Virus record (IMG/VR): IMGVR_UViG_3300032770_000001
Location: 391,709-455,708 of that record
Reading direction: 5' to 3' (one strand)
DNA: 64,000 bases
Shown: one piece after another, positions 58,071 through 64,000 of the stretch
How the letters are laid out: each line of letters starts with the position of its first letter
How positions within the stretch are numbered: the stretch's first letter is position 1
Translations under genes and position numbers: made by a program
The notes under the pieces: generated by a model
What the model was told of the DNA's origin: nothing
What the model saw: only the letters and a program-made list of their open reading frames with translations
The model's database searches: none

Positions 58071-58619
58071 TTATGTCTGAATCTGTGGTCTCCATCGACC
58101 CATCGGCAATCCCTGAGCCTTCTTTTCAGCCCAAATGCGTTTCAAAGCCGCCGACGTGCTTTTACGAATTTGTTCTTTTGTTTCTTCAGGATGAGTCTTC
58201 CCGAACATCGGGTGTTTTTGACCATCCACCAACCCCTGATGGGCATTAGACATCCGCTGTCGTGTCGCCTCGGAATGCTTCTTGCCCAGCATCCCCTTCG
58301 GGTGTTCGACGTATTGATTAAACCACCCGCCCTCACCACCAACAGTCATGTTGTAACCGAAAGCCGGGTCATTGCTGCGGTATTCCGCTATGAACTGTTT
58401 TTCTAATCGATCAAGCTGAGCCGGAGAAGAAGCCTCAGCGAGAATTTCAACCTGAAACGCCGGGACCCCATACTTACGAATAGCTCGGTGAATATAGAAC
58501 GGGCTGCATTCAGTCAGAGCCGCCGCGATATGCTTTTTCCAACGATCCGCCGCACTCTTCTCGGTTTTTCCGATATAGACTTTTTCGTTCTTCAAATTCC
58601 TAATGAGATAAATGACCAT
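58071..58619 (-). CDS. GIY-YIG homing endonuclease with NUMOD3 repeats
   Basis: Start MVIYLIRN at 58619; KVYIGKT, AIRKYG, GYNMTVGGEG, GKKHSEATR. Confidence 0.9.
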   Translation of the reverse strand: MVIYLIRNLKNEKVYIGKTEKSAADRWKKHIAAALTECSPFYIHRAIRKYGVPAFQVEILAEASSPAQLDRLEKQFIAEYRSNDPAFGYNMTVGGEGGWFNQYVEHPKGMLGKKHSEATRQRMSNAHQGLVDGQKHPMFGKTHPEETKEQIRKSTSAALKRIWAEKKAQGLPMGRWRPQIQT

Positions 58620-58620
58620 G

Positions 58621-59958
58621 TTAAGTTTGTATCTTCCCAAACGTGACCGTGCGACCGATAGGAATGTGCGGATTCTCCCAGTCCTTACCCGGCACCGTGC
58701 GCGGATCGAAGATCGGCTCCCCGCTGCCTTGCCCGGTGTACGGGCTAGCCTTGCCATCCTGCGGGTCTTTGTGAACCACAGGGTTGTAAATCGTTGGCAG
58801 CCCGGTGTTAATCGGGATCAGATAACGGGTATCGCCCTCATCCAAGAGACTGGTATTGAAGCTCTGCATTAACAGAATGCCGCGAGGGTTCTTGTAGGTC
58901 ACCCCGGAAATCACCAGACGCTCGAAGTTGCGGCGAACAATAAGGTCGCCGTTCTGAACGATGGGCGTAGGACCGAGGAAGCTTCCCGAATCACGAGTCA
59001 CCTTGCGACCACCTTCGTTCAGTTCCACCTGCAAAGCGGTGTCCGGTGGGACGTAAACGAAATCGTAAGGACCGTAGTAACCGCCAACGATACCGACGCC
59101 GAAACATACCGGGCAGGCGGTGCGTGCCGAGTTGAGCCCGGTGTTGGAGCAGCCGCAAAGCTCACCACGGGTTTTGCGGAACAACAGATAGGCGGGTTCG
59201 CCCACCTGCTCAAAGAGCCAGTCGTTGCGGCGTACCATCTCTTGGTACTCCCACGTGATCTGATCGACTTCCATCGTGTTGACGATGATGCTGCCGTGCG
59301 CACCGGGCGCGTGGCATTCACCTTTGTCGCCAACCGGGACAACCGTATAGAAGGTGCGAATCAGCGAGGCGTAAACTTCGACGAAGTTTTGGAGCTTCTT
59401 GTAGACCACTTGAAAGGTCTTCACCCCGGAGTAGTCCGCCTGCCATACGACGCCGTTGGACTTGATCGGATATGCTGACGTTGAGCCGCCAAGCGGCACC
59501 GTATTGTCCATCTGCAACCAAACTTCACGGTCGAGCCCGTTGACGCGGGCCGGACGGAACGATTGCCCATCCATGATGACGGTGACATCGTTGACATCGT
59601 TACTGATGACCGGGCGTCCCTTGACTACGTCACTGTAGATGTGATCGGGCACGCGAAGCACCCAGCGTCCAACGTTGAGCGGATTGCCGAGGACATTGTC
59701 GATGACGTTGCCCTGCTCGATCCAGTCTTGCGGCTGAACCGTATAGGTCACCTGCTCCAACGAAGACATATCGCGATAGAAGTGGCCGACGTGAGGAGTC
59801 TCATTGATCTTGATCCAGTGAGTCGGGTGATCGAACGCACGGTAGATGTTGTAGCCTTTCGTGGCGGCGGGGTCATCCACCCACCACAGATCGCGGCTGC
59901 CCACATAGCTCGAATTCAGAACGATTAGTTGTTCAACCATTTTTATCCCAGCAACCAA
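58621..59958 (-). CDS. Putative neck/head-closure protein with Zn finger
   Basis: GEPAYLLFRK..GELCGC...CPVCFGVGIVGGYYGP...GDLIVR; follows the adaptor gene. True start may be MVEQL at 59940. Confidence 0.65.
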   Translation of the reverse strand: MVAGIKMVEQLIVLNSSYVGSRDLWWVDDPAATKGYNIYRAFDHPTHWIKINETPHVGHFYRDMSSLEQVTYTVQPQDWIEQGNVIDNVLGNPLNVGRWVLRVPDHIYSDVVKGRPVISNDVNDVTVIMDGQSFRPARVNGLDREVWLQMDNTVPLGGSTSAYPIKSNGVVWQADYSGVKTFQVVYKKLQNFVEVYASLIRTFYTVVPVGDKGECHAPGAHGSIIVNTMEVDQITWEYQEMVRRNDWLFEQVGEPAYLLFRKTRGELCGCSNTGLNSARTACPVCFGVGIVGGYYGPYDFVYVPPDTALQVELNEGGRKVTRDSGSFLGPTPIVQNGDLIVRRNFERLVISGVTYKNPRGILLMQSFNTSLLDEGDTRYLIPINTGLPTIYNPVVHKDPQDGKASPYTGQGSGEPIFDPRTVPGKDWENPHIPIGRTVTFGKIQT

Positions 59959-60899
59959 CGCTGCTGACGCAAGCCGACGCTGACTGGACGGTTCGCGGTC
60001 ACCAACGGTGCCATGTTGTTAAACTGTTGCATGTATGCATCGCCCAGTCCGCGATACAGGTCAGCCTTATTGATGTCCAGCGTGACGCCGTTCAATGAGT
60101 ACGCGAACTGATCGCCTGCCCAGCGGATGGCTTCGCTTGACAGACAGAGCCCAGCGGCACCGAGAGCGGCGATGTTGCCCCAGTCCTTCGGAATCGTGTC
60201 CAGCGTCCAGTTGTAAATGTTCTTCGGGTTGTACAGGTTCAGCATGGAGATCGCCTGATCCAATGCCATGAGAATCTGGGTGTCCAGCCAGATAAAGCCG
60301 ACGCGGGTGTTAAAGCCTGCGACCACGCGACCGGGGGTTGGCGGACGGAAATGATAGTTGCGATCCGGATTGGTATCCGATAGGTTCCAGCGGACGTACA
60401 TGACCGCCTTGGCGATCATCTCCGGAGTTGCGTTGCCGACGTTCACGATGGATGGCGGCACAGCGATGACGGTCGAGGGTGCCTCGAAGCCGGGGTTGGT
60501 CGGATCGACGTTCTGCACCACGAAAGTTTCCTGCACGGTGTCAATCGGGCAGTTGGTGGAGTAAAGCTGAAGGTTCCAGACCAGACGATAGACGCCCTTC
60601 CACGTGGTAGGGATCGTGATCGGCACATAGTAAGCGCCTTGGGATACACGGGTCGGCACCTGCTGAGGCAGGCTTGCCAATGTCCAGCCCTCAGGCGGGA
60701 GCGGCGGGCCGCCAGCCATGTTCTGCGGCTGGTGCAAATCCCACTCATACGCTTGATCGATCTTCATGGGGATGGTGTCAGTGATCTTGAAAATCGTGTA
60801 GTTCAACAGTGCGGGGTCGATCAGAGCCCCGTTCGCATCTCGAACAAGGATTGAGAGATTGTTCGGACCCAACGTTGTGCCTTGCGTAAACGTAACCAT
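59943..60899 (-). CDS. Putative head-tail adaptor (neck) protein
   Basis: Start MVTFTQG at 60899 (TAATG overlap); helical C-terminal domain IWLDTQILMAL...FAYSLNGVTLDINK. Confidence 0.7.
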   Translation of the reverse strand: MVTFTQGTTLGPNNLSILVRDANGALIDPALLNYTIFKITDTIPMKIDQAYEWDLHQPQNMAGGPPLPPEGWTLASLPQQVPTRVSQGAYYVPITIPTTWKGVYRLVWNLQLYSTNCPIDTVQETFVVQNVDPTNPGFEAPSTVIAVPPSIVNVGNATPEMIAKAVMYVRWNLSDTNPDRNYHFRPPTPGRVVAGFNTRVGFIWLDTQILMALDQAISMLNLYNPKNIYNWTLDTIPKDWGNIAALGAAGLCLSSEAIRWAGDQFAYSLNGVTLDINKADLYRGLGDAYMQQFNNMAPLVTANRPVSVGLRQQRWLLG

Positions 60900-61489
60900 T
60901 ATGCAACCCCCGGAAAGCGGCTTTTCTTGTGAGTTTCTACCCAATTTTTGGATGGGAGAATCTGTCGAAGGATCGGACTTAGCCGCATCATGTCCTCATA
61001 AGAGAGATAGTTATTCTTAATCCGATTGCAAACAATACATGCGACCACGCAGTTCTCCGTTGAGTACCCTTCTTCGTTGTTTTTTCTATCTAAATTTGTT
61101 CGACCATTCCCGGTCTTTCCCATGTTGTGTTTTGTCCACGAGATGGCTGAACCACAGTAATGACATTCGGACACCCTCGTGAACTGCAAGAATTCTTCAT
61201 AGGTCAGATCGACCTCAACGTCTCGTTTCTCCGAGATATGACGGAGCCTATTTAACAACCACTCATACGGACGGAGAATCTTTCCCCGTTGATGCGGAAG
61301 GATTTGCAGCATTGAATTTCGTCTCACACATTTGAGACAAAATCCTTTATGCTTTTCAAAACGTCTCGGTTCCACCCAAAACTCGTTGGGACATCCTTCA
61401 GTCGCACAACGGAAGAGGTACATATTCTTATTCTGACGCCCCTGCGGGCGTAACTCTTTTCGGAGCGCATCTGTGATTTGCAAACTCAA
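60899..61489 (-). CDS. HNH homing endonuclease
   Basis: CHYCG...LDRKNNEEGYSTENCVVACIVCNRIK; TTG start; AATTT-N12-TAGAG at 61497..61518. Confidence 0.9.
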   Translation of the reverse strand: MSLQITDALRKELRPQGRQNKNMYLFRCATEGCPNEFWVEPRRFEKHKGFCLKCVRRNSMLQILPHQRGKILRPYEWLLNRLRHISEKRDVEVDLTYEEFLQFTRVSECHYCGSAISWTKHNMGKTGNGRTNLDRKNNEEGYSTENCVVACIVCNRIKNNYLSYEDMMRLSPILRQILPSKNWVETHKKSRFPGVA

Positions 61490-62624: not shown

Positions 62625-62963
62625 TTAACCGTGTGCTTGTAGTGTATCAGCAGACAGGTTAGCTGGCAAGCGTGTGGCAAGAGCCCGGATTTTCTCGGTG
62701 ATTTCGATGATCTCCGGCACGTCGCCGTTCTCTCGAATCTTCACATCCTCATACTCAGCAGCAACGCGGCGATACATCTCCATCAGGGACATGACGAGGG
62801 TGCCGAAGGTGTTGTTGATGTTCTCGTACTTGAGCCCCGCGTCCAACAGGGAGTGCAGGGTCAGGCGGGTAATGACGTAATTAAGGTCTCCGACGTTTTC
62901 CATCACCGGAAACAGGTCTACGAGGAGAGCGTCGATTTCCTCGCGGTTACGAATGTATGGCAT
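62625..62963 (-). CDS. DUF6899-like protein
   Basis: MPYI...GDLNYVITRL...EMYRRVAAEYEDVKIRENGDV pattern, recalled from phage nucleotide-metabolism clusters. Confidence 0.7.
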   Translation of the reverse strand: MPYIRNREEIDALLVDLFPVMENVGDLNYVITRLTLHSLLDAGLKYENINNTFGTLVMSLMEMYRRVAAEYEDVKIRENGDVPEIIEITEKIRALATRLPANLSADTLQAHG

Positions 62964-62973
62964 GATACCTTCC

Positions 62974-63960
62974 TTAAGCGCAGTTTGTCTCTACCGCAGA
63001 GATGCGCATCCCATCTTCAATGGAAACCTTCTGTCCGCGATGCAATGACCCGGAACCGGACTTTTTGTGGTAGATCACGGTCGGCATTCGCTTTGAGCCA
63101 GCACCGTACACGTGCTCCACAATGTCCTCAAACGAGATCGATTCCCGCAATAACGGGATGTTCTTCCCATTAAGGTTGATGGTGATTGTCGGTAGCTCCG
63201 GTACTGGGTGCGATTCGAACATGTACAGTTCGCGCACCAGACTCCACGCAATCACGGAGTAGCCGAGCAGGTCCTTCACGGCGTCTGTTTTCGGTTCGTA
63301 GTTAGCTTCGCGACCGAGCGCACTCAATTGAGCGTACCGGGCGATCTTGTCCCACAAACGCGGGATCGTACCCTGCAACCCATGGCGGCGGTAGCTCTCA
63401 CCGTAATCATGGGTCTTAGACAGAAGCGTCTCAATGATCTTCGTAATGCGGGCCTGTACCATCGGTTTGAGGGTCATGAAACTTTCTTTGGTCGGGGCTC
63501 CCTTGATTTGCCCCTCTTCGAGCAAGCACAGGACGGCTGCCACGTAGGTCAGGAATCGAAGCTTCTTTTCCGCCAGCACCACTATGCTGACAGGCCACTC
63601 GCCAAGCGGTTTATTCCAGAAGACATTGGTGACGCCTTCGAGAATAATGAACTGGTAGACCCACTGAAGCGTAAGGAATTCACCGTTGTAATGCCCATTT
63701 GGGGGCAACCCGGCTTCGATGATCGCCGAATCGAGCGACCCGGTAACCAGTTCGCCGTTAACGATGGACTGACCGCTGAGAGAGAGCACGAGTTGCTCAC
63801 GGGTCTGGAGTTCCTCGACTATGGATTGATCGATGTCAAATATCTGAGGTAGGGTGTTCAGAGTCGCTTCCCAATCATAATCCTGAAGCACGAACAGCCC
63901 TTTGCGGACGTTTTGCCAAAATGGTGAACCTTTGAAAAGGTCGGTTGTAGACGTTCCCAT
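62974..63960 (-). CDS. Nucleotide-modification-associated (DUF1599/Nmad1-like) protein fused to a C-terminal multi-ubiquitin-like domain
   Basis: KTHDYGES...RLWDKIAR...DAVKDLLGYS; C-terminus ITINLNGK...SISFEDIV...TVIYHK...GSLHRGQKVSIEDGMRISAVET. Confidence 0.75.
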   Translation of the reverse strand: MGTSTTDLFKGSPFWQNVRKGLFVLQDYDWEATLNTLPQIFDIDQSIVEELQTREQLVLSLSGQSIVNGELVTGSLDSAIIEAGLPPNGHYNGEFLTLQWVYQFIILEGVTNVFWNKPLGEWPVSIVVLAEKKLRFLTYVAAVLCLLEEGQIKGAPTKESFMTLKPMVQARITKIIETLLSKTHDYGESYRRHGLQGTIPRLWDKIARYAQLSALGREANYEPKTDAVKDLLGYSVIAWSLVRELYMFESHPVPELPTITINLNGKNIPLLRESISFEDIVEHVYGAGSKRMPTVIYHKKSGSGSLHRGQKVSIEDGMRISAVETNCA

Positions 63961-63998
63961 GCTTATTCAATACCAACTTTCGAGTATTAAATATTGTG
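63961..63998. promoter_or_regulatory. Divergent pair of GTATT-N3-T elements
   Basis: Minus strand gtattgaat-aagc-ATG (63960); plus strand gtattaaat-att-GTG at the window edge. Confidence 0.5.
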
Positions 63999-64000
63999 GG

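Follow-up and report, generated by a model that had tools for sequence, protein, structure and literature searches.

The gene lies on the minus strand near the end of a 64,000-nucleotide stretch (the window, the last 64 kb of the 455,708-bp IMG/VR virus record IMGVR_UViG_3300032770_000001) and encodes a protein of 328 amino acids (P0001) that ends in E-T-N-C-A followed by a TAA stop codon. CheckV rates the record as complete (100%). Its two ends overlap by 149 bp with one mismatch, so that the genome is circular or terminally redundant and the upstream neighbours of the gene are found at the start of the record. The window encodes a tail sheath and a tail protein, in line with a phage origin. 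The sequence recurs in at least three wetland metagenome samples; no RNA run was found to hold the locus. The features are as follows (window coordinates):

62974..63960 (-), whole gene, 328 aa: DUF1599-family helical body, flexible linker and C-terminal BubA-like Ubl domain; stop codon TAA at 62974-62976.
63211..63960 (-), residues 1-250: mostly helical body.
63247..63417 (-), residues 182-238: match to DUF1599 / nucleotide-modification-associated domain 1 (NMAD1), with the invariant core K..YG.S.RR..G...R.WDK.AR.
63187..63210 (-), residues 251-258: linker of low model confidence (pLDDT about 59) between the two domains.
62977..63186 (-), residues 259-328: Multi_ubiq / BubA-type beta-grasp (Ubl) domain.
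62977..62988 (-): C-terminal tail T-N-C-A.
62625..62963 (-): downstream gene, 112 aa, DUF6899 (75 bits), starting 10 nt after the stop codon behind a GGAAGG ribosome-binding site.

The initial annotation had described a prokaryotic Multi_ubiq beta-grasp pattern at 62974-63200, i.e. in the last ~75 codons plus the stop, fused to a nucleotide-modification-associated protein and without a terminal glycine. This observation was confirmed. A Pfam search with the C-terminal 76 residues gave Multi_ubiq (PF14452) as the only family hit, covering model positions 2-67 of 69. The score of 17.1 bits (E 0.0063; 13 bits for the whole protein) is below the gathering threshold of 24.5 bits. Three orthologues with the same extension (P0002-P0004, 324-325 aa, 63-66% identical, all ending in TNCA) scored 29.2, 20.4 and 29.0 bits, again without any other family, so that two of them pass the threshold. 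In the domain itself the orthologues are 59-61% identical, and the TNCA tail is identical in all four proteins.

AlphaFold2 predicted a beta-grasp with the topology beta-beta-(beta)-alpha-beta-beta-beta-beta, both for the whole protein (64-sequence alignment, pLDDT 88.9 overall and 84-95 in the domain) and for the domain alone (pLDDT 85.9). The absence of such a fold had been named beforehand as the outcome that would overturn the annotation. A Foldseek search of the PDB placed the multi-ubiquitin protein of E. coli ZDHYS365 (PDB entry 9cd2) first for both models, with a TM-score of 0.75-0.80, 28-32% identity and E 4e-5 for the domain alone. An independent VIA-align search of 48,161 chains ranked 9cd2, 9d5b, 9d59 and Citrobacter BubA as the top four (Z 7.4-8.8), followed by a long list of eukaryotic ubiquitin-like domains. 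A fold search of BFVD gave no match at E <= 0.001.

The N-terminal body is a helical protein with a borderline match to DUF1599/NMAD1 (PF07659): 24.1 bits at a cutoff of 25, with 25.1, 24.8 and 24.5 bits in the orthologues. Many shorter homologues carry the precomputed PF07659 label, and 29 of the 30 nearest named language-model (Atlas) clusters are DUF1599. NCBIfam gave no hit, and PHROG 1485 is of unknown function. A sequence search of the PDB with the whole-family alignment found nothing for this part and Foldseek gave no significant match. The only structural lead, a resemblance to dimeric dUTPase with Z 6.1 in VIA-align, is within noise for helical proteins.

About 120 phage homologues of the body were found, many of them on contigs of 180-890 kb. 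All but P0002-P0004 are 240-277 aa long (mostly about 250-260 aa) and stop where the Ubl begins; these short forms are 37-62% identical over residues 1-250. The DUF6899 gene is the conserved downstream neighbour of both long and short forms, among the short forms in the closer relatives, and NAMPT and a NUDIX/NMNAT gene lie upstream in most relatives checked. A second IMG/VR contig (locus L086) carries the same 328-aa form. The fusion therefore recurs, and the Ubl is an addition specific to this jumbo-phage lineage at the 3' end of an otherwise conserved gene, placed between that gene and its DUF6899 neighbour.

To classify the Ubl domain further we built a profile from it and its orthologues. 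This profile aligns to residues 142-220 of the 222-residue chain of 9cd2, i.e. to its third and last beta-grasp, which is the conjugated one. 9cd2 is BubA of a Type II Bub operon (formerly 6E.2 / DUF6527), which consists of BubA, the E2-E1 fusion BubBD (DUF6791-ThiF) and the DUF6527 serine protease BubE, with no JAB (bioRxiv 10.1101/2024.11.21.623966 and 10.1101/2024.11.21.623953). A word-index search with the 76-aa domain alone had found nothing, but an exhaustive search with the profile over 1.84 billion representative proteins returned 109 hits at E <= 0.001. In almost all of them the match lies at the very C-terminus of a protein of 67-290 aa, which fits a need for a free carboxyl end. Apart from the representative of the query clade itself, 89 of these 108 relatives end in Ala, 14 in Ser, 4 in Gly and 1 in Thr, with a consensus tail of T-[G/D/S/N]-N-A. 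A profile of 108 aligned domains (104 of the hits plus the phage domain and its three orthologues) hit 9cd2 end to end at E 1.4e-17, and showed that the solved chain ends in T-D-K-S, which corresponds position by position to the T-N-C-A of the phage protein. The same profile did not reach Bil or Type I Bub chains by sequence. The phage domain scores 88 bits against it.

Genuine Type II Bub operons were collected in two ways, from plasmids and from metagenomes. Seven annotated or verified operons came from plasmids of six genera in three phyla, plus one IMG/VR contig; each has the order multiubiquitin, ThiF/DUF6791, DUF6527, and all seven Ubls end in Ser. A metagenome scan gave 53 loci, which were scored with HMMs built from those seven BubBD and BubE sequences. 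All 52 Ubls with a complete 3' end finish in Ser, mostly as T-[D/N]-[K/R]-S, and BubBD follows directly wherever enough downstream sequence exists; the one exception is L064, which ends in T-D-N-S. In the set of operon copies used to compare tails, 37 of 37 end in Ser, with K, R or Q before it in 33 of 37 (T-[DNG]-[KRQ]-S), and in nearly all of those loci with enough flank BubBD and BubE lie directly downstream.

The Ala-type Ubls, in contrast, were orphans in phage-like DNA in each of the about 15 cases examined in context. Standalone genes of 62-80 aa lie in arrays of small unknown ORFs (relatives P0122, P0125, P0129, P0131 and P0141; IMG/VR loci L021, L022 and L087-L089); L090 is a like orphan that ends in Gly (T-N-N-G). 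Longer proteins carry additional N-terminal parts: P0127 (176 aa), P0133 (SSB plus Ubl), P0181 (histidine phosphatase, His_Phos_1, plus Ubl), P0167 (235 aa, on a 191-kb contig) and a 148-aa zinc-ribbon-like protein in the 595-kb phage LR756511.1. None of them has BubBD, BubE or ThiF within the available flanks, although several of these contigs are only 1-3 kb long, so that about nine or ten of the cases are decisive. In a tblastn search of GenBank phages the domain was found only in LR756511.1, as a weak case; a query with P0133 hit only SSB halves. The complete 455.7-kb genome studied here has no ThiF, BubBD or BubE and only this one Ubl. Its only JAB gene lies about 93 kb away, beside a RelA/SpoT-like gene.

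With the last four residues removed, the domain of the window scores 86 bits against the Ala-type profile and 32 bits against the operon profile. Since the Ala-type set was retrieved with the profile of the window's own clade, this contrast and the proportion of 89 of 108 are biased towards it. Ser-enders with Asn at -2 also score as orphan type, so Asn at -2 may be the sharper marker. In a tree of the 70-residue domain the terminal-residue label is strongly clustered (16 changes against 45 in shuffles), but most forks are unsupported and the tree could not show whether the orphans form one clade.

In order to get an idea about a possible interaction with a conjugating enzyme, we co-folded the domain with a dimer of a genuine BubBD (from locus L024). 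The prediction reached a score of 0.65, against 0.00 for the best of three controls (a mark reached by 51 of 78 solved complexes and 2 of 108 mismatches), but it used a non-cognate enzyme and may only reflect memory of the solved BubCD-BubA complexes, and thus indicates likeness rather than proof of binding. The runs agree in at least 89% of contacts and the pLDDT of the partner is at least 81. In the predicted pose residues 323-328 sit in the adenylation pocket of the ThiF domain, in contact with loops 186-191, 273-278 and 298-303.

The interpretation given in the initial annotation is only partly supported. From the missing terminal glycine it had inferred a non-conjugatable decoy, possibly directed at Bil-type defence, or a co-opted oligomerisation domain. 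The closest family, however, is BubA of Type II Bub and not Bil, and its operon-encoded members end in Ser. E. coli BubA is reported to give ATP-dependent BubA~BubBD and BubA-BubA products in vitro (bioRxiv 10.1101/2024.11.21.623953), and T-x-N-A is the normal kind of tail in the subfamily to which the phage domain belongs. In this Ubl family the absence of a terminal glycine thus says nothing about whether a protein can be conjugated, and the idea that TNCA marks a disabled Ubl was rejected. The decoy idea survives on other grounds: the domain is an orphan, lies at the extreme C-terminus in nearly all relatives and has a tail that differs systematically from that of operon BubA. Oligomerisation is neither supported nor excluded. 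The Ca-dependent filaments reported for bacterial Ubls belong to three-domain Ubl3 proteins, while the single-domain fusions with DUF1508 that were tested were monomers (bioRxiv 10.1101/2024.11.21.623966).

A comparison with related systems places the domain as follows. It descends from the same stock as Type II BubA, with a tail of the same length that begins with the same conserved Thr and, in our reading, works like it, but it lacks two defining features of BubA, the position next to BubBD and BubE and the tail motif T-x-[K/R/Q]-S. We therefore do not classify it as a BubA. Type II Bil Ubl3 structures (9d5b) are among the top structural matches; BilA, however, has a universally conserved Gly at or near its end, which is exposed by the JAB protease BilC, and belongs to an E1/E2/JAB operon, neither of which is present here. 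ThiS and MoaD are likewise small beta-grasps with a functional free C-terminus, activated by ThiF/MoeB-type enzymes, but they end in Gly-Gly, gave no Pfam or profile hit and match only weakly in structure. The architecture of a variable N-terminal module followed by one C-terminal beta-grasp parallels the bacterial coiled-coil-Ubl1, DUF1508-Ubl1 and N/G-rich-Ubl1 proteins of Gong et al. (bioRxiv 10.1101/2024.11.21.623966). Those are operon-encoded Ubls, whereas the N-terminal module here is a full-size phage protein that exists without the Ubl in most relatives. Eukaryotic viruses also carry copies of a host protein modifier, such as baculovirus v-ubi. Those belong to a different host domain and a different Ubl family and keep the Gly-Gly end, and such proteins appeared only as weak matches in BFVD. 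In the literature searched, only the two Bub preprints mention BubBD or DUF6527, and we found no report of phage-encoded BubA-like domains. The interest lies less in this single fusion than in the orphan, phage-borne subfamily with its own tail signature.

Based on these results we tentatively propose that the phage protein is a mimic of a host Ubl. In this view the free, conserved tail would be presented to an E1-type adenylation site supplied by the host, i.e. a BubBD-like E2-E1 and possibly the BubE protease, and the protein would act as a competitive or dead-end substrate and blunt a Bub-type conjugation response. The change of the terminal Ser to Ala, together with that of Lys/Arg to Asn or Cys at -2, is a candidate for what makes it a poor or dead-end substrate. 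Our analysis establishes the identity of the domain, its predicted fold, its membership in the subfamily, its C-terminal position with a conserved tail and a conserved flexible linker to the body, the orphan status and the dichotomy of the tails; binding to a host enzyme, competition with the host Ubl and any counter-defence effect are inferred, without any experiment linking an orphan Ubl to a Bub system. The proposal also presupposes that the host of this phage, which is unknown, carries Bub. Moreover, the authors of the Bub work report that they found no Bub operon that protects E. coli from phage, so the antiphage role of the supposed target is itself unproven. The two differences in the tail could equally mean that a different, unidentified enzyme reads it.

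The biochemistry of Bub operons is known (oxyester intermediates), while their biological role is open. A recurrent set of phage-borne BubA-like domains without enzymes of their own, which differ from operon BubA at exactly the reactive end, is the kind of counter-measure signature that has revealed the function of other defence systems. The subfamily gives a way to test this role, with the domain, a tail swap and cognate BubBD as reagents. A more far-reaching version of the proposal, which we consider doubtful but not excluded, is that the T-x-N-A orphans are a phage-specific family of mimics that poison Type II Bub-like E2-E1 enzymes, the replacement of the terminal Ser and the preceding Lys/Arg turning a substrate into a dead-end ligand. 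Their existence would then be the first evidence that Bub pathways act against phages, and the proteins they are fused to (DUF1599 protein, SSB, phosphatase) might point to what Bub targets.

Among the alternatives, a docking, regulatory or oligomerisation module independent of E1/E2 chemistry is less likely than the mimic, but survives best. It would work like the integrated UBL domains of many eukaryotic proteins, for example by binding the DUF6899 neighbour, tuning the DUF1599 body or recruiting the protein to a phage complex. Beta-grasp domains are common interaction modules, the linker is flexible, the fusion partners are diverse (DUF1599, SSB, His_Phos_1 and a zinc ribbon) and the genome has no conjugation enzyme. 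However, a pure docking module would not need the extreme C-terminal position seen in nearly all of the 108 relatives and a conserved four-residue tail. Standalone versions of 62-80 aa exist, and of the bacterial single-domain fusions that were tested those with DUF1508 were monomers and only one of two with a coiled coil dimerised.

It is unlikely, though possible, that the domain is a conjugatable tag used for the phage's own benefit. A host Bub/Bil-type enzyme, or an unrecognised one, would then activate the Ala terminus and attach the whole phage protein, or the standalone Ubl, to host or phage targets, which would be a hijack rather than inhibition. The tail has the same length and register as that of conjugation-competent BubA, the predicted pose has Ala328 in the adenylation pocket, and bacterial Ubls also carry varied N-terminal domains. 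The systematic change of the last two residues relative to operon BubA argues against an ordinary substrate of BubBD, and no target or enzyme is known.

A sulfur carrier of the ThiS/MoaD/TtuB type, thiocarboxylated by a host ThiF/MoeB-like enzyme and serving a nucleotide thiolation step linked to the DUF1599 domain, is very unlikely. ThiS and MoaD do appear among the weaker structural matches, DUF1599 is described as nucleotide-modification associated, and the huge phage LR756511.1 has a ThiF-family gene 209 kb away from its orphan Ubl. On the other hand there is no Gly-Gly end, sequence and structure are much closer to BubA (TM 0.75-0.80 against 0.51; E 1.4e-17 against nothing for ThiS), the same domain is fused to SSB and to a phosphatase, and the present genome has no ThiF. 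A chance resemblance or a decaying remnant without function, for which only the score of the window's own copy below the Pfam cutoff speaks, is contradicted by the 88 bits against the family profile, the confident fold prediction, the conservation of domain and tail in four orthologues and the identical tail on another contig.

The two ends of the 455,708-bp record (window 63852-64000 and positions 1-149 of the record, the latter also numbered 1-149 in locus L009 at its start) overlap by 149 bp with a single mismatch (A/G at window 63874). The first 36 codons of the gene are therefore present twice. The genome is circular or terminally redundant, although it is listed as linear in IMG/VR. The neighborhood of the gene, across this junction, contains the following features:

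L009 509-904 (-), immediately upstream of the gene: a 131-aa phage protein with a TonB C-terminal domain (26.9 bits in Pfam, 30.5 bits for TIGR01352).
L009 2373-3806 (-), a few genes upstream: NAMPT (NAMPT_N plus NAPRTase, 477 aa).
L009 3784-4716 (-), likewise a few genes upstream: a NUDIX protein with a weak cytidylyltransferase-like N-terminus (310 aa).
Window 62625-62963 (-): a DUF6899 protein (112 aa, 75 bits).
Window 60899-61489 (-): an HNH/endonuclease VII-like protein (196 aa).
Window 58071-58757 (-): a GIY-YIG plus NUMOD3 protein (228 aa).

The TonB-type protein is also found as the neighbor of orthologue P0004 (locus L003). The pairing of NAMPT with the NUDIX protein is seen next to the short homologues as well and looks like a phage NAD+ salvage module. 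The DUF6899 protein is the constant downstream partner of the DUF1599-family gene in its long and short forms, to which it appears to be translationally linked (10-nt spacer with GGAAGG). The HNH/endonuclease VII-like and GIY-YIG proteins, located among the genes just downstream, are both likely homing endonucleases.

The only JAB-family gene of the genome was observed in the region 361597-363593 of the record (locus L008), approximately 93 kb away from the Ubl gene. It encodes a 183-aa Prok-JAB protein (29.8 bits; L008 1303-1854, minus strand) and lies directly downstream of a gene for a 477-aa protein (L008 1869-3302, minus strand), which combines an inorganic-pyrophosphatase-like domain with a RelA/SpoT nucleotidyltransferase domain.

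Other C-terminal fusions of the same Ala-ending Ubl domain were found on two short, phage-like contigs: an SSB plus Ubl protein of 176 aa (P0133, L019 2173-2703) and a histidine phosphatase plus Ubl protein of 287 aa (P0181, L018 678-1541). A 595-kb uncultured huge phage (LR756511.1) encodes a 148-aa protein ending in the Ubl domain with the tail T-G-D-A (locus L031 2776-3222, plus strand). The same phage encodes a ThiF-family protein (110 bits; record positions 280703-281230, minus strand) at a distance of about 209 kb.

Among the Ser-enders of the metagenome sample, a 74-aa Ubl ending T-D-N-S (locus L064 4995-5219, plus strand) is the only one without an operon, with no BubBD or BubE within 5 kb. 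With Asn at position -2 it fits the orphan type. Some metagenomic Bub loci (L035 and L059), in turn, show a second BubE-like or BubBD-like ORF within a few kb of the operon, which could represent tandem or paired Bub systems.
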